From Oikopleura dioica (taxonomy: Eukaryota > Animalia > Chordata), in the NCBI GenBank assembly GCA_907165135.1, contig OU015567.1, positions 4,588,001-4,652,000 on the forward strand: a DNA stretch of 64,000 nucleotides, in the 5' to 3' direction. Under the pieces are notes generated by a model. That model was not told the DNA's origin, searched no databases, and saw only the letters and a program-made list of their open reading frames with translations. Position numbers and translations under genes: made by a program. Positions 1,047-9,890 of this stretch are shown here, one piece after another (position 1 is the first letter of the stretch; the number at the start of each line of letters is the position of its first letter).

Positions 1047-4000
1047 AAGTCGAAACTCACCGCTGACGCCGAGCAAAACAACCTCATCGCCAGTTTCGAG
1101 CAGCAACTCGCCGAGAAAGAAGCGAAGAAACAAGCTCGTCAAGAAGCCGAAAGAGCTCGTGAATTCGAGCGAGAAAAGAAACGCCGAGAATTCGAAGCGT
1201 TTCAGCAAGAAATCAACGCGATCTGCGACTCCGACGAAGACACAACTCCAAAGCCAAAAGTTGTTGAAAAAAGCTATGCTGTTCCGATTGCGATTAGTTC
1301 GGTCAAGGGAAGATGGGACAAAGTCGAGCAAGATCGAAAGAAAGCTGAAGATGAGAGGGCAAAGGTAGGAAAGAAGGCTCTAGAAAATTTTTAGTCTTTT
1401 GAAGATTTTGAAAGCAGCTCATCAAGTTCCAAAGGGATCTAGCTCGGCTAACATCCTGACAAAATTACAGATTTTCTCGGTTAGTTACAGTGAATTTTCA
1501 TCCCATTTTATCCCTCATTCTCGAGCTGCATTCCAAAAGTTCCAAAACTAGCGAAAAATGTTCATTTCGACTGCCATAATTTCTGATTCATTTTCACGGA
1601 AAAATCATAAATCTCATCTTCTATTACAGTTTTTCATGGCCTATTCTAGAACGAACGAAAGCAACGAATGGCCAAAGACGCCCAAGACAAGAAAAAGCTC
1701 CAAAAAGAAGAGCTCGAAAAAGAACTCGCCCTCGTCGAGTCCGGCGAGTCCACCCGACGCCGAACGGTTAAAAACACCGCGAAGCCGAAAAAACTTCAAA
1801 TTTCCGAAGATGACCTCATCAAAAAAGCGGAAGAAGAGCGTCTCAAGAAACTTAGGCTCGAGCGAGAAAAACGAGAAGCAGAAGATCGAGAGCGAATGGC
1901 GTCTGAGCGAGAAAGACTGCAAGACGAAGAGGAGGATGAAATCAAGGAGGAAAATCAGAAAGTTGAAAGAAAATCAGTTGTGCCAAAGAAGTTAAACTTG
2001 ACGATGACTGATTTGGAAAAACAGCGAGACGAGCAATTTCGAAAACGAGCTGAAGAAGAGCGGAGAAGACGAGAAGAAGCCGACAAAAAGCTCTTCGCAG
2101 CTGAGCGAGCCCGACTTGCCGAAGAAGACGAGGATGTTGCTGAAGAAATGTCGAATGAGAGGAAGGAAGAAGTGAAAGTGGGAAAGATTCAGCTGGATTA
2201 TGACAAGATTGTTTATGAAAACAACAAGGCGAAAGAAAAAGAGCTGGAAGAGGAGATGAAAGGCAGGATGAAGCAGTTCAGGAATTTGAGGCAGCAATCG
2301 AAGGCCTATCAGGAAGAGGATTACAGACAGCGAGAAACTCAGGTATTTTACCGACTAGACCTTCGTTTATCGATATTTTTAAGGCGCGATCAGAATCAAA
2401 AGCCACCGTCAATGTCTCAAAACTCGACTCAAACAAACTCAATCTCGACAAACACTTTGCCGAATCTGAAAAAGAGTCCGAAAGAAAACTTGCCGAAGAA
2501 AAAATGCGCGAACTCAAAGATGAGATTCGTCAATTCAACGAAGCCAAGGCGAGAATGATGGAAAACGAAATGAAAGATCTTCTTTCGGAGCAAAAAGAAT
2601 GCGAAGAAAACCAACCGGTTGTCAAAAAACTCGACGCGAGCAAGGTCAAATTCGATAAAAACGCTGATGAAAAAGTTGCGAGAGATGCGGAAATGTTAAG
2701 ACTCGAGAGGATGAAAACGCTGAAGGCGGAAATGGTCGCTTTCGAAGCTCAAAGAAAAGAAATGGAAAACGAATTCGATGTCCTCCCGAACTCAAAGGAG
2801 GAAAAAAGTAAAGTTGCTGTTGGAAAACTCGATTCTTCGAAGACCCAATTCGATTCTCTTGAACAACAGAGGGCAGAGAAGAGACTTCAGGAGCTTCAAG
2901 AGCAGAGGATGAAAGATCTTCAAGCTGAGATAGATCGGATGGAGGAAGAGCGCGAAAAATTCGATGAAGAGGAAGAAATGAATGGTAAGAGTCCTCTTTG
3001 ACCGTTTCTTGTTCAAAATTGTAGGTGAAGATAAGAAAGAAGAAGTTCAAAAATCAGCTCCAAAGAAGCTCACGACTGATTTCGAGAAGATGCAGCTCAA
3101 GAAACAGCTAGAAATCGAGCGAGAAATGAAAGATCAAAAGATGAAGCAAATGCAGGCTGAACTTGAAGAGCTCCAGGTTTCTTTCTCTAAAAAAACGATT
3201 CACATATTTTTAAGAAAAAATGGAATGATGAAGAATCTGAGGAAGAAGAGGAGAATCAGGCTCAAAAAATCATCGTCGAGCCCGGAAAATTGAACAAGCA
3301 ACAGCTTTCGTTTGACAAGGTTTTGGTTTGAATGTCTTCAACATGATTTTTATGAAACTTTGGAGTCCAAAGTTTTTCTAATTTGGTCTGTCTGTTTTGT
3401 TTTTCTTACATTCATATTTTCATTAAAACATTGCCATTCGAGATGTCGACCGCGATGAGCTCGGCGGATCAGATGCGTTTGAAATACGCGCGCGATCAAC
3501 AACTCAAGGCGGAAACCGATTGCTTCCGAGATCTGAACAAGATCCAGGCCCTTGTTAAACACATCATCTCATATCTCATCATTGCCATATGAAAATTGAT
3601 TTATTCATTCATGTATTAACATCTGGAACGGAGCAAGAACTCAAATTGCAAACCAATTCTCAGCGACATTTGTACGAAATGACCGAGCATCGGCCGAAAG
3701 AACCGGTAAAGAAGATGAATTCTGTTTCGAAGTTTGAGAGGATGCAGCAGATGCAAAGAGAGGAAGAAGAAAAACGCCTGGAAGAACTAAGGTTTGTTTC
3801 AAATATAGAGCTTACTGACACCCTTATCATCTTTTATTTCTATTTTAAGGATGGCGAGAGCCTTAAAAGAACGCTCAGAAATGATCGAAGCAAAAGAACG
3901 CGAGCTAAGGGAGGAAATGGATGAGCTAGAAGAGGTCTTTCTTTTATCGAAGCTACGACCCTTAATTTTTCTAGGATTCTTATTCTGACGAAGATGATAT

Positions 4001-4369
4001 GAACGGATCTCCAGCATTCCTCGAGCCGCTAGAAGACATCACGCTAAACGAGGGAGACAAATTCAAACTAACTTGCTCTATCGCTGGTTTTCCTCAACCA
4101 AAAGTAGGTTTTGGAGAGAAAAAAAGGTGTCGAGAAGTTTAGGTGATCTGGTATCATAATAAAATCCCCCTGCCAAATGGAGTTGATTATCAATACAAAG
4201 TCAAGGGAACTTACTACTCGCTTCATATGGACGAAGTTTTCAGAGAAGATGAGGGAACTTATGCAATCAGGTTTGTCATCATTTTTGGATGGTATTTAAA
4301 AAGGTTTCAAGGGCAATAAACGACAAGGGGATCGACATGTGCGAATGTTTCGTCAATATCAGAAGTTGA
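1047..4369 (+). CDS. Nexilin-like E/K/R-rich coiled-coil protein with C-terminal I-set Ig domain (multi-exon; 5' end uncertain, possible upstream exon near 855-890)
   Basis: ORFs 1002, 1668, 2504, 2982, 3383 and 3589 join through short introns (e.g. 2344-2382, about 2986-3025, 4104-4142). The last exons read PAFLEPLEDITLNEGDKFKLTCSIAGFPQPK|VIWYHNKIPLPNGVDYQYKVKGTYYSLHMDEVFREDEGTYAIR|AINDKGIDMCECFVNIRS*, an I-set Ig domain resembling the nexilin C-terminus as I recall it (DGEDYQY...EDGGEY..KAVNNKG). A (P/V)(K/G)KL...F(D/E) motif repeats in the coiled coil. Confidence 0.75.
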
Positions 4370-4601
4370 AAGATCTTGCCAGTGTAAATTTGTTCATACT
4401 GTAATTAAAATCGATTTGATGAAGCTACATTTATTTTGCGACAGTATTTTCAGTCTTTTAAATTTTCGTCTACGTCTTCTTCATTTTCTATGTCGTCGAA
4501 TTCGGCAAAAATGTTTGGCTCATATTTGAGCTCTTCGCTCTCAATTGTGAAATTATCTGCGAGCCTAAAATATCGTTGCATTTTATGCTTCAGATTTCAT
4601 C

Positions 4602-7561
4602 TTACGAGATGAGCTCTTCAACGATCATGGTAAAAATCGCACCCAACCAGGCGATACCAAAGAACATCCAAACTTGAAAACAAGGATGAGAAGCCATTAA
4701 AATGGGAAGCCCTTACCGACAATGAGGGAGCGGTAGATTTTCAAGAACTCTGGTTGAAACATGAATTCTGGAATGATTTTCGGTTGGGGAAGATTTTCCG
4801 TGTCGATGTGCTTTGGCTTTTGAAATGTTGGTTCTGAACAGTTTTGCTGTGATGGTTAAAAATGGTAGTACCGTAGTCTCCATATCCGATCGTAGTCAAA
4901 GTAACAACGATGAAATATATAGACGTGACCATGTCCCACCCTTCGATGTCATAAAAGATCGCCAACTGGATTAAGCCCAGAATAACGATTGAAATTGCTA
5001 GGTAGAGAAAAATGCTCCCAACTCGCACTGCCTAAAAATCAGCTTAGAAAGCAATCAAAATAAAGCTGTTTACTCGGGACGGCTTCTTGCCGAAAATTTT
5101 CTTTCTCAAAGCTCCAAGTTTTTCATTGAAGAGTTGAGCGTACATCGCCATTCCAAGAGCTGGACATCGTTATTGAATGATTTTTATTTGACAGTACCTG
5201 TGATAGGAACGCTGATGAGAATAAACACCGACACAAAGATCTTCCCATTGTCCGAGACCGGAAAAGTCGAACCATAACCAACAGTTGTCGCAACTTGAGA
5301 AGCAAAGAAAATCGCGTTCACATAAGTTCCGAAAATGCTTGGACAAGAGATGTTCTCCAAGCACTCATCTATGTCTTCACTTGTGCAGTTCAGATTTTCC
5401 AGCGCTTCGGTCATATTCACGCTTGTTCTTGTTTTCTTCTCATTTTTCAATTTTGGCAAGAGTTTCTTCACGGTCGGGTGTGGCGGTTTCGGCTGCTTAG
5501 GAAGAGGAGAGGAGGAGGATTCAGCGTCTTCTTCAGTTTGGCTGTCCCCGAGCGCCAGATTTTTGAGAAGATCGAAGTTTCCAGAAGCCAGGTCTTTCTG
5601 TTTGTCCAAAATTCCCTCCTCGTCCGCGAGTTCTTCTCGTTCCGTTTTGAATTTAAGCATTTCGATCCAAAGCTCAAGCGCGTTATTTTTCGTCTTTTCT
5701 TGAAGAAGCATAAAGTCTGTTTCCAGTCGGTATCCGGCTATCTCGTCATCGGTGTGGAAAATTTCGCGGAAGAAGGATTTCAGCTCGTTTTCCGATTTTT
5801 GGAGGTATGTTTCGGTGTAATTGACGAAATTTGATGTGAGATCGGCGATTTTTCCAAAATCAGTCGCAGTGTCCTTAATTTTTAAAATTAAAAAAAAGAA
5901 AATTTCACAAAAAGAGTCAAACCTTTAATTCAGTGAATCGAGTCACAGTCTCATTCAACGCTTTCACTGGTATTCCTGTGTCATTTTTACGCTAGAAAGT
6001 TTTTTATCAGAATTTTTTTCTTTGACAGACCTGATTATTAAGCTCGTCAACGACCGTAGTAAAAATATTTTTGTCTATCGAATCGATTGATTTGTATTCA
6101 TAAAGCGAGATGTTTCGCTTGAATTGATAATTTATCATAAAATCCAGCTCGACAATTGAGTTGATTGTTGTATCAGGAATCAATTTGATTTCTAAACAAT
6201 ATCAGCTCAAGCTCTATAAAAATAAACGAAACCATTGACGTTGAAGTCGCTCGAATTCAAGACTTGATTTTTTAGCAAAACGCGGTTGAACCAATCCGTG
6301 TTTATATCACCAACTGCGAGGACCTTGAATATCATTAATTAAAAAAAAAAACTAATTTTGAAGCAAACAATATCTCGTCGCCGATTATCGCTTGGTCGAA
6401 AACGAAGGCTCATCTGGGTGATTTGAAAGATGAAACTGGTGGTGTAAACTTCAGCTACTTCAGCATCAAGAATCGACGGACCGGAATAGTTTTTCTGAGT
6501 ATCGCGGACTTGAAAGAAGTAAAAAGAATGAAAACGCAATTGAGCCTACATGTTCGATGAAATTCGAGACGATCGGTATTATGAGGCGAAAACGGTTCAG
6601 TTGCATTTTCGGCTTCGATGACCGATTCTGGCATTTCCTGGTTGATGACGTTATAATTGAAAATTTTAAATTCTGCATTTTGGTTTTCGATTTCGATGGC
6701 ACGGGGGCCGAGAGACAGCATATCAAGTTCGCCAGAGAACGATCGAGTGAATTTTTCTTGCCCATCAACTGACAAACTAACAATGTAATTGTCATCATTT
6801 CCAGCGCGTTGACTTTATCAAAAGATTATAAAAAGTTATCAATTTTTAGCAAACATCCGAAAATTTTTATGAATTTTTATGCTCTCCTGATTTTCCATCG
6901 TGAAAGCATATCGTTAGTATCAACTGGTAAATCGAATAAATTCATCATCAAAGAGTCATCGTTAACTCGAACAGTTAATGCTGAAGTCTGACCTTGATCA
7001 TTGACCTAAATAGGGTAGTTAATTAATAGTTTATTTATAGTAAGTAAAAATTTAATTTACCTCTAGCAAGATGAATTCAAAAAACAAGAATCGAAATTCA
7101 AAAGTGTCTTCAGGAGAAGAGCTCAATTGGAACTCAAAATTGAAATTGGGGTGCATTTCTGGGCCGCCCATTGTCAGAAAAAAACATTCGTCAAAATTTT
7201 CACAGCTTTCAATTTTTTCATATCCATCTGTTTGCCGTCGTTTTCTTTCAGCTCGATCAGCGCTTTCGAAAAAATCAACCCCTGCTCCGTCATAAAGTCG
7301 CAAAAGCTGCTCTCTCTTCCGTTTTCTCCCTAGCAGCGCTTCTTCCTGTTCCCGTTGTTTTTCCGCAGCTTCTTTTAGTTCCCGAATATTTCGATCGACC
7401 TCCAAGCATTTTTCTCGTTCCGGAGCGCCTTCGATTTCCAAGAAAACGATTCCTCCGACGACGATCAAGATGATGTAGAGAAGCAGCAAAACGATGTAGC
7501 TGACAAAACTGGACCGCAAAAACGGTATCCCACCGCGGCAAACATGAAAACAGGAAACCAT
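4602..7561 (-). CDS. Two-pore-domain (K2P/KCNK-like) potassium channel with a very long M1-P1 extracellular region
   Basis: TM1 SYIVLLLLYIILIVVGGIVFLEIE (ORF 7052-7561). Pore 1 FFASQVATTVGYGSTFP plus M2 (ORF 5184-5711). M3 and pore 2 SIYFIVVTLTTIGYGDY (ORF 4741-5028). M4 VWMFFGIAWLGAIFTMIVEELIS* ends at 4602. Start codon uncertain. Confidence 0.85.
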
Positions 7562-7782: not shown

Positions 7783-9890
7783 TTAGATACAGATTTCGAG
7801 TTGACCATAATTCGTCTTTTCCTCCCGCTCGTCTATTCTTGCAATGTTACTTTCGAGCTTGGCACCCCATCTTTGGATCATTTGTTGAGCCCATTCTTTG
7901 TCCCAGAGGTTGTTTTCTTCTGCCGGGTCGCATTCGATCTTGTAGAACTCTTTGCTTTTCGGCATGAGTTTCCATTTTCGCCAGCGGATCGCCTGGGGAG
8001 CGAAGTGGACTGCATGAGTCATGATTTCTTCAGGACCGTCGATTTTGTCCGAAGCGCCGGTGAGAAGCGGGAAGAGAGATCGGCTATCTGGGCCTTCGTT
8101 GCATTTTGGCTTGTATTCGACCAGGTCGGAAAGGGTTCTAGAAAAATATCTTCAACCAATCGAGGCTTCAGAGCTTTACCTGTAGACATCGACGTACGAA
8201 ACGATTTTATCCTCGATCGTCCTCGCCGGGAACCCCTTTGGATACCACCACATAAAGGGCATTCTGTGCCCTCCTTCCCAATTCGTTCCCTTTCCTCCCT
8301 TCAGTCGGACGTTTTGGACGCCGTGATCGCCGTTCGTGAGATCGATTGCGTTTTGAGTATGGCCGTAGAGAGCTTCGTTGACGGGCTCGTAGTTGGTTCC
8401 AGCGCCATTGTCGGACATGAGGACGATTAAAGTGTTGTTGATTTGATTGCTTTTTGAGGTTTTAAAAATGAGCGATTTATGCCAAGAGGGCATTTTTCAA
8501 TAAAAATTTTCGGGATTTTCGACCAATCAAAAGCCTCAAAAATTTTTGTGACGAAAAAATAATTTTTTTTTTTCAACCCTTTTCCTTTCTTCAAGCGCTT
8601 TAAACAGCTTTCCAACCATTTCATCCGCCTCCGCAATCATCTCCCCCACAATCCCCACTTCCGTCGTATTTCTAAATTTCTCCTGAGAGTTGAAAGGCCC
8701 GTGCCCAAATCGCATCCCGTAGTACGCAAAGAACGGCTTTTCCGAATCAGCATTGGCTTTGATGAACTCATTGAGCTTCGTTGAAATGGTCAAGTCTTTT
8801 GTTCGCGAGTCGAAATTGGGCTGAGCGATCATGGATCGAGGGTAGTTGTTGGTGAACCGCTCGCCGTAGGTTTCTTCTTTTGGCCAGGGTGCGGCGACAT
8901 AAGCGCCTTTCCAGAATTTGATGCCTGAAAAAAAGCTCAATGGAGGAGAAAGATGAAACGTTTTGAAGAGATTATTTGTTCCAAATTATTCAGCAGGGGT
9001 CTTTTTCACAGAGTGCCCCCCTTAATTCATCTTCTAAGACGTCGAATTTTCTAGTGCCAAGATAAAGCACCTCTACGTACCTGTGTCTAGCTCTCTTTGA
9101 GTAGGTCCTCCTTCTGGAAAAAATCGCTGAATCGCCCACTCAGTAAACGGCTCAACTTGCTTCCCATTCTCAAAGTATCCATTCGGCGAGCAGCAGGGAG
9201 ATTCCGCCGAGAAGGAATAGTCGAAGCCATGGTCGATTTCAGAAAGCATGAAGGTATAGTTTCCGGGTCGGAAAAACAGGCGTTTTTCGTCGAATCGATC
9301 GTTGAATTTTTCCCCGTTCGCGTATGTCTTCTTCCATTCGTTCAATTTCTTCCAGCGAATGTGATCCTCCGACTGGATATCGTTCCTCAGCATCGTTTGG
9401 AAGGGTTGAGTTTTGCCGAAAACGCCAGTTGTGTAGCCAGCTTTTTTGAACATGAGACCAAGATGTGGTTCTCGCCCGGGCTTGATGATTCGTTCTTTAC
9501 TGTCTTTTAGAGAGTATCTTCCGGTGAGGAGCATGTAGCGACTTGGGGAGCAGCGGGAGGATCCAGAGTGCGCATCCTTAATTTAAAAAAATGAGAAAAA
9601 AGGGCAAAAAATAATTTTTTTTTCAGATAAAAATCGAGAAAAAAAGCAAAAAAAATGAAAAATTTTAAAAAAAGTCTCCGTCAATTATGAAAAGTCATCT
9701 TTTTTACCTTAAAATTGACTCCTTCTGTCCCCAATCTGTCAATATTCGGCGTTGGCACTTTTGCTTTAGCCTGGTTCACTTGAAAATCTCCGACTCCAAA
9801 GTCATCTGCCAGAAGAAGAATCACATTTGGTCTCTTCCTTTCATCTGCGAATATTTGTGAAAAAATCGAAAAGTACTTCGCAAGTTTCAT
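7783..9890 (-). CDS. Cys-type sulfatase (S1 family, arylsulfatase-like), multi-exon
   Basis: MKLAKYFSIF...RPNVILLLADDFGVGD...TPNIDRLGTEGVNFK|DAHSGSSRCSPSRYMLLTGRY contains the CxPxR formylglycine motif. Also NTLIVLMSDNG, LKGGKGTNWEGGHRMPF and FYKIECDPAEENNL. Stop at 7783. Confidence 0.9.

Follow-up and report, generated by a model that had tools for sequence, protein, structure and literature searches.

Gene structure of the locus

The window is a stretch of 64,000 nucleotides of Oikopleura dioica (assembly GCA_907165135.1, contig OU015567.1, positions 4,588,001 to 4,652,000), and positions are given here from its first letter. Between 7561 and 4450, on the minus strand, 13 exons, separated by 12 introns of 38-74 nt (11 of them GT-AG and one GA-AG), join in the spliced model as a single frame of 856 codons. 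The upstream neighbour, a sulfatase gene, ends in a separate stop codon and has separate poly(A) signals. In its own genome no paralogues of E1, E3, E4, E6 or the insert part of E8 were found, and the gene, from an Oikopleura-type larvacean, is intact, present in one copy and under selection.

Exon E1 (7561-7061, 167 codons) starts with the ATG at 7561, which is preceded by an in-frame stop, and encodes a short cytosolic N-terminus and the first transmembrane helix (M1). M1 is followed by a long, charged segment of helix type (residues ~44-95), then by a linker with a Cys-x5-Cys motif and by the beta-type strands with which a beta-rich region begins. A GT-AG intron of 55 nt separates E1 from E2 (7005-6887, 39 codons plus 2 nt), which carries a further part of this region; the remainder, a ConA/LamG-like lead, is in E3 (6812-6550, 87 codons), together with an acidic linker that has a conserved sequon. 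The four small exons E4 (6508-6353), E5 (6313-6233), E6 (6191-6031) and E7 (5991-5923), with 51, 26, 53 and 23 in-frame residues, respectively, make up the middle module (6508-5923), which is conserved and has about 155 residues. E8 (5873-5198) has 225 codons in one frame and sits in a 246-codon open frame. It begins with about 108 helical residues followed by a Pro/Lys-rich linker (~5549-5424). A segment with three cysteines (~5423-5334) precedes the pore helix, and the exon ends with the first pore domain (P1) and most of M2. E9 (5159-5074) and E10 (5031-4872) complete M2 and continue through a short loop in the cytosol to M3 and P2, while E11 (4833-4717) and E12 (4672-4606) encode the P2-M4 loop and M4. 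The last exon, E13 (4564-4450), encodes a 38-residue acidic cytosolic tail and closes with a TGA stop (4452-4450), downstream of which there is an AATAAA signal at 4435-4430. All these exons lie on the minus strand.

The original prediction, which was made from the letters of the window, had placed the end of the gene at 4602 with an almost absent cytosolic C-tail, and both points have to be revised. The TAA at 4602 falls just inside intron 12, a GT-AG intron of 41 nt, and E13, which is conserved, moves the end of the gene to 4450 and provides a tail that is short, of about 40 residues. In metagenome contigs from related Oikopleura lineages (L007, L010, L011 and L012), which form the comparison set used throughout, E13 is found in L007 with donor and phase unchanged and with 62-70% identity.

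The junction between E2 and E3 is the least certain of the gene model, because it needs the GA-AG intron (intron 2, 6886-6813, 74 nt) and because there are rival in-frame options at GC 6907 and GA 6895; the GA-AG option is the one that keeps most of the coding sequence. GA-AG introns are frequent in O. dioica (PMC7072748). In L012 the counterpart exon of E2/E3 is uninterrupted and of similar length, and the support that it gives to the junction is positional only.

From the genomic sequence, we infer that the 13 exons would be connected on one mRNA. A model that is built from genomic sequence and has one non-canonical junction could be an artefact, with two genes or an assembly error strung together by splicing. 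This is highly improbable, since the exon order is shared, within about 3 kb, by independent contigs of several lineages, none of the insert exons brings a start codon, a signal peptide or a stop, no other M1 is available for P1, and the sulfatase gene upstream is closed.

Membrane core of the channel

Searched exon by exon, the protein matches the Ion_trans_2 PFAM model (PF07885) twice, in E8 (3.4e-9, E8 residues 183-225) and in E10 (6e-9). Four hydropathy peaks are found at residues 23-41, 662-680, 711-729 and 795-813; the first of them, with a peak value of 3.31, is M1 (~7495-7439) and is the sole transmembrane segment upstream of the pore. The first selectivity filter, TVGYG, is found at residue 647 (5285-5271) and the second, TIGYG, at residue 751 (4893-4879). 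Both are identical in L007, and hydropathy and filter positions together satisfy the order M1-P1-M2-M3-P2-M4. The two Ion_trans_2 matches, the four transmembrane helices and the canonical filters identify a K2P channel, as had been predicted, and they support a subunit of about 856 residues with an ordinary membrane core and short cytosolic ends. [quoted passage not shown] P1 and P2 thus match solved K2P chains of different subfamilies, and no single subfamily is indicated.

In principle, the K2P fold could serve only as the membrane anchor of a non-conducting adhesion or scaffold protein. In favour of this, the genome has another K2P-like gene, with thrombospondin repeats (C5, ~10.355 Mb), in which 270 non-channel residues are fused to Ion_trans_2 and the first filter, read by eye in the open reading frame, lacks the G-Y-G triplet. 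A non-conducting anchor is nevertheless unlikely at the present locus, where both filters are canonical and are kept unchanged in L007, and where few parts of the gene are as constrained as the pore and transmembrane exons.

Extracellular M1-P1 linker

The loop between M1 and P1 has about 590 residues in one frame (about 600 from M1 to the first filter), in agreement with the insert of 550-600 residues that had been proposed, and the two peptides quoted from it in the original prediction are both recovered across splice junctions, the first across E2/E3 and the second across E5/E6. The usual K2P cap has several tens of residues. Among 81 matches with at least two pore motifs, the first filter-like motif lies, by a crude measure, a median of 24 residues and at most 119 residues after the hydrophobic segment that precedes it, and the loop is roughly ten times the usual M1-P1 size. 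No paper was found in the literature that has a K2P cap enlarged to such an ectodomain of about 590 residues.

The loop has ten N-glycosylation sequons and seven cysteines, and hydropathy gives no hydrophobic stretch between residues 60 and 620. Nine of the ten sequons have counterparts in the L007/L012 alignments, and all nine are kept in L007 despite differing flanks. The E6 sequon is absent in L012, and the tenth sequon, which is the E4 site, lies among the 46 residues that are identical in an alignment of 48. Because the sequons are kept across lineages and no transmembrane segment interrupts the loop, its predicted location is outside the cell, where it would be glycosylated; the extracellular placement first proposed is thereby supported.

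The insert apparently has at least two globular regions, and no fold is assigned to any part of it by PFAM or PDB searches per exon or by AF2 models of the L012 exon and of E8, whose pLDDT of 42 and 37, respectively, is too low for a fold search. PFAM searches made exon by exon give no match outside the pore domains, and PDB sequence searches with E1 (first 67 residues), E3, E4 and E6 return nothing meaningful. An HMMER search of the full library with E8 gives a single fragment, P0001, as a match to the insert part and no full-length annotated protein, and word-index searches with E3 and E4 give no candidates. By sequence, M1 is followed by a charged segment of helix type, and a model of low confidence places a short helix ahead of P1; residues 2-108 of E8 are modelled as helical by AF2 (pLDDT 37).

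The first segment of the insert had been described as LamG/ConA-like, and for this identity there is only a lead. It shares with Laminin-G, pentraxin and other ConA-like sandwiches a pattern of short beta-strands and a W...VDG...LG-type motif, and the nearest clusters of E3 in a protein language model (ESM) include Laminin_G_3 (7 of 30 at 0.95) and Pentaxin. The L012 counterpart has weak language-model neighbours only (0.85-0.88), including GH43_C2 and 3keto-disac_hyd, which we take to be ConA-like folds, and L012:186-593 is modelled by AF2 as all-beta with eight strands (pLDDT 42). Unlike those sandwiches, the region has no PFAM or PDB match exon by exon, and its models are of low confidence: the Laminin_G_1/2/3 and Pentaxin profiles do not match E1, E2, E3, the E3 open frame or the L012 exon up to E = 10, for a domain that is split over three exons.

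The second region, which had been called SEA-like, is within E4-E7 and is split over four small exons, none of which has a PFAM or PDB match of its own. A G-S-V-V-V type autoproteolysis site is present in many, not all, SEA domains. The region differs from the SEA domains of membrane-tethered proteins in that this cleavage motif is absent by direct reading of E5-E6, in which the corresponding turn has no G-S and is P-D-T-T-I-N-S.

The insert is physically tied to the pore, as 180 of its residues and P1 are encoded within the same exon, E8. Both the end of E1 and the start of E8 are in phase 0, and E2-E7 total 849 nt, so skipping of these exons would keep the frame and join E1 directly to E8, the loop then being about 300 residues long. 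In that case the long form could be a minor or tissue-specific product, or the insert exons could mainly serve a second, non-channel protein anchored by M1. Such products are rather doubtful as the main output of the gene. The beta-rich region has its first strands in the tail of E1 and continues in E2-E3, so that skipping would leave half a domain; E7 continues in frame into E8 with no stop. In addition, a signal scan of the gene's strand between 7030 and 5188, from E2 through E8, finds no AATAAA, and therefore nothing that would terminate a separate transcript before the end of E8. Even in the form joining E1 to E8, the loop would be about five times as long as usual. The AATAAA in intron 8 (5188-5183) was considered as the signal of a truncated product and rejected; it is not kept in L007 and is taken as a chance occurrence.

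Conservation in related lineages

The metagenome contigs cover the gene in overlapping parts. L010 has a homologue of E1 followed by E2, whose start is conserved, L012 extends from the tail of E1 through E7, and L007 extends from E3 through E13. E1 is 88% identical in L010 and 51% in L011. The C-terminal 48 residues of E3 are 38% identical to L012 in a codon alignment, and tblastn gives 38-43% to L012/L007. Identity to L012/L007 is 96% for E4, 79% for E5, 47-50% for E6 and 83% for E7. Compared with L007, the insert part of E8 is 65% identical and its pore part 89%, and the exons that follow are 82% (E9), 92% (E10), 84% (E11) and 95% (E12) identical.

Silent sites are saturated across the insert (pS 0.74-0.92), while pN is 0.045 in E4, 0.10 in E7, 0.17 in E5 and 0.23 in the insert part of E8. 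The corresponding values for the pore and transmembrane exons are 0.04-0.08 (E8b, E10, E11 and E12), with 0.14 in E9, and the E4 protein is as constrained as the pore despite its saturated silent sites. Since silent sites are saturated and the protein is conserved, the insert is coding and under purifying selection. Conservation of E4 as a DNA or RNA element was also considered, and is rejected by its pS of 0.87. The beta-rich region, of about 140 residues, is fast-evolving: E2 and the first half of E3 are no more similar to their positional counterpart in L012 than shuffled sequences.

Proposed architecture and comparison with known systems

The best explanation of the locus, to which we give a probability of about 0.72, is a selected single-copy gene for a K2P subunit with an ordinary core and an extracellular linker ectodomain of about 590 residues. 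From M1, the linker would run through the charged helix, the beta-rich region of about 140 residues, the conserved module of E4-E7, the 108 or so helical residues of E8, the Pro/Lys-rich linker and the short three-Cys segment, to reach the first pore helix. The first and last of these segments may still form the cap above the dimer pore, and the remainder would be a glycosylated ectodomain at the cap apex. The channel presumably still conducts potassium, and the ectodomain may bind matrix or a ligand outside the cell and so position or gate the channel. Purely by inference, the channel might have a receptor-like, tethered or mechanosensory role.

The protein is similar to known K2P channels in its four transmembrane helices, two pore domains, T-x-G-Y-G filters and short M2-M3 loop, and, much as the helices of the known cap do, a charged segment predicted to be helical follows M1 and a second one of helix type may lead into P1. 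It differs in the linker itself, which in known K2P channels is a two-helix cap hairpin (PMC4906011) and here has the ten sequons and seven cysteines described above. The cap is a hallmark of the family whose function is still poorly understood (PMC4906011). If the protein is made as modelled, the cap apex would be an insertion site for a large, selected and glycosylated ectodomain with the canonical pore kept, and the channel would be a natural test case for gating of the filter by forces or ligands acting on the cap, which sits directly over the pore, as well as a template for the engineering of ligand-gated leak channels.

The extra domains of yeast TOK1 include additional membrane helices. 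TOK1 is a member of the wider K2P family that departs from the compact four-helix plan (bioRxiv 10.1101/2025.11.12.688043); in contrast, what is added at the present locus would be a soluble ectodomain within the M1-P1 linker.

Taken with the other giant-cap K2P-type gene of the genome, the one with thrombospondin repeats, a protein made as modelled would suggest an expansion of channel architecture that is specific to the larvacean lineage. It is possible, as a tentative extension, that larvaceans have a class of "receptor-type" K2P channels with adhesion- or lectin-type ectodomains in the cap apex, of which the present member, with its intact filters, would be a leak channel gated or anchored by a ligand or matrix, such as house or tunic material, through the action of the cap helices on the selectivity filter. 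The two genes differ in that the other has TSP_1 repeats and shows no detectable similarity to the insert described here, and their pore regions are not close paralogues. Both have a giant ectodomain before P1, a long helical, sequon-rich stretch in the exon of the pore domain, and a Cys-Pro motif just before the pore helix.

Channel core and gene model

The window gene is modelled as 13 minus-strand open segments (E1 to E13) spliced into a single frame of 856 codons, running from an ATG at 7561 to a TGA at 4452-4450, and the probability that its architecture is as modelled is put at about 0.7 to 0.8. The encoded protein is, by its sequence, a K2P channel, as the original prediction held, and it is given no subfamily placement. 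Pfam Ion_trans_2 matches it twice (E8, 3.4e-9; E10, 6e-9), hydrophobic helices in the joined model number exactly four (residues 23-41, 662-680, 711-729 and 795-813), and both filters are canonical, TVGYG (residue 647) and TIGYG (residue 751). The nearest solved chains to the P1-M2 piece are those of TWIK-1 and TWIK-2.

The window sequence is eukaryotic, with very short introns. The 12 introns of the gene measure 38-74 nt and 11 of them are GT-AG, the sole exception being intron 2 (6886-6813, minus strand), which is GA-AG, a class that is unusually frequent in Oikopleura dioica (PMC7072748). Intron lengths, splice-site types and genome size are all in keeping with that species. Both peptides quoted in the original prediction are recovered, each spanning a junction of the model (E2/E3 and E5/E6). 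The weakest link is the E2/E3 junction; several donor/acceptor pairs keep the frame there, and the backing from L012, a metagenome contig of a related Oikopleura lineage, is confined to position and length, because its 136-codon exon resembles E2 and the first half of E3 no more closely than shuffled sequences do.

The gene had been thought to stop at a TAA at 4602, leaving almost no C-terminal tail. This stop sits just within a GT-AG intron and is followed by a further exon, E13 (4564-4450, minus strand), and by an AATAAA at 4435-4430, so the tail is short but present, an acidic stretch of 38 residues. Its counterpart in the related contig L007 has an unchanged donor and phase and is 62-70% identical. 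The Asp/Glu runs of this strongly acidic cytosolic tail (4453-4563, minus strand) are retained in L007 and may act as a di-acidic motif for export or binding.

Conservation among related lineages

Searched against the full library, E8 matched no full-length protein, only fragments called on metagenome contigs; the contigs of these fragments, and one JGI contig found using E4, form the comparative set. L010, which is 89% identical to the window in nucleotides, holds E1 followed by the beginning of E2. L012 carries the tail of E1, an uninterrupted exon of 136 codons replacing E2 and E3, and then E4, E5, E6 and E7, while L007 spans the second half of E3 to E13, and these two are 93.6% identical in nucleotides where they overlap. 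Exon order and strand are unchanged across the three contigs.

Between the window and L007/L012 the silent sites of the insert are saturated (pS 0.74-0.92) and replacement change is low, with pN rising from 0.045 in E4 through 0.10 in E7, 0.17 in E5 and 0.23 in the E8 insert part to 0.29 in E6, so the insert exons are protein-coding and constrained. The pore and transmembrane exons E8b, E10, E11 and E12 have pN of 0.04-0.08, which the constraint on E4 equals, and E9 has 0.14; the K2P core is intact and under selection. In the more distant fragments L013-L015, with P1 identity of about 50%, sequon-rich coding sequence lies upstream of P1 on contigs shorter than measurement of the loop needs, and L015 has a Pro-rich motif resembling that of E8.

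The alignments indicate intron turnover among lineages, including the single exon that replaces E2 and E3 in L012. In L007 an extra short intron with an apparently non-GT donor (2044-2105) separates the Cys-Pro motif from the P1 helix, about 62 further bases lie within E1 of L010 (685-746), and in L011 an intron follows the conserved N-terminal motif (57-108). Positions 1-310 of L007 have no match to L012, and their translation repeats a pattern of Ala/Pro/Leu/Arg/Ser, the result of either a mobile element inserted into the exon-3 region or chimeric assembly of the contig.

The M1-P1 loop

From the end of M1 to the first pore helix the joined model has about 590 residues, within the range of roughly 550-600 originally predicted. 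In a crude survey of 81 matches with at least two pore motifs, the first filter-like motif is separated from the hydrophobic segment before it by a median of 24 residues and by 119 at most, against about 600 from M1 to the first filter in the window gene. No hydrophobic stretch is found within the loop (maximum 19-residue Kyte-Doolittle mean 0.91), which contains ten N-x-S/T sequons and seven cysteines and has a net charge of -37. Nine sequons have readable counterparts in the L007/L012 alignments and all nine are retained in L007 despite differing flanks, which places this large, selected loop outside the cell; the E6 sequon is kept in L007 and lost in L012, and the tenth, in E4, falls among 46 identical residues of 48 aligned. 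Such retention looks like selection on glycosylation.

Within the one open frame of E8 (5873-5198), 180 insert residues lead directly into P1 and M2, and the only membrane helix upstream of this exon is M1, in E1. Exons E2-E7 (7005-5923) might instead serve a separate protein that shares M1, but they supply neither a start nor a signal peptide nor a stop, and AATAAA is absent from the gene strand between 7030 and 5188. A shorter isoform with a loop of about 300 residues is conceivable, since E2-E7 total 849 nt and their skipping retains the frame, but it would leave the E1 tail as a half-domain. An AATAAA at 5183-5188 (minus strand) overlaps the stop that follows E8 when intron 8 is retained, with M1-ectodomain-P1-M2 as the product; this signal is probably due to chance, because it is not conserved in L007.

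In the single-gene model the loop begins with a charged segment of heptad-like hydrophobic spacing (residues ~44-95, conserved Cys at position 52), which may be an extended first cap helix, and continues through a linker carrying a conserved C-x5-C to short alternating strands across the E1 tail, E2 and E3 (residues ~137-275). An acidic linker then precedes the best-conserved part, E4-E7 (residues ~295-450), which is followed by residues 451-558, helical by AF2 at low confidence, by a linker rich in Pro/Lys and by a three-Cys segment, kept in L007, whose terminal Cys-Pro lies immediately before the pore helix.

The original prediction likened the first part of the insert to LamG and the second to SEA. 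Exon-by-exon Pfam and PDB sequence searches of the insert gave no match, while a language-model search with E3 returned Laminin_G_3 clusters in 7 of 30 matches (score 0.95) and Pentaxin (0.92). The L012 counterpart has only weak neighbours in this search, including GH43_C2 and 3keto-disac_hyd, which we take to be ConA-like folds, and AF2 gives it eight strands at pLDDT 42. A beta-sandwich of the ConA/LamG kind is thus a reasonable lead for the beta-rich region and is to be read as no more than that. The strand and helix pattern of E4-E7 agrees by eye with SEA; the region is divided among four small exons and the G-S cleavage turn is absent from it.

The first and last loop segments would still build the cap, with the two ectodomains of the dimer placed at its apex, where they might bind matrix or ligand and so localise or gate the potassium leak. 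Control of gating by the ectodomain is considered rather unlikely.

Genomic neighbourhood and K2P family

A sulfatase gene on the same strand (7783-8493, minus; Pfam Sulfatase 2.5e-10 at 8179-8493) lies ~220 nt upstream of the channel ATG and ends in a separate stop at 7783, with AATAAA signals of its own at 7760-7755 and 7636-7631; the two genes are possibly in an operon. On the opposite strand, two exons of an immunoglobulin I-set domain (3999-4319, plus; Pfam 1.4e-5 and 5.3e-6) are part of a gene that is convergent with the channel gene at its 3' end.

Searches of the 64.3 Mb assembly, in 19 pieces, found at least 78 Ion_trans_2 matches, many of them paired 300-400 nt apart, which implies many K2P genes and suggests a large family in a small genome. 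The closest pore paralogues of the window gene are only 45-50% identical, and no second copy of any insert exon was found in the assembly. In the published literature we found no K2P channel whose M1-P1 linker holds a large domain, and nothing on Oikopleura K2P channels.

One K2P-like paralogue (C5:10.355 Mb; 3413-5776 of the locus C5:10352000-10360000, minus strand) has a 390-codon frame in which 270 helical, sequon-rich, non-channel residues are fused with an Ion_trans_2 domain; two TSP_1 repeats lie in the next frame upstream. Unlike in the window gene, G-Y-G is missing from its first filter, as judged by eye, while the Cys-Pro before the pore helix is common to both.
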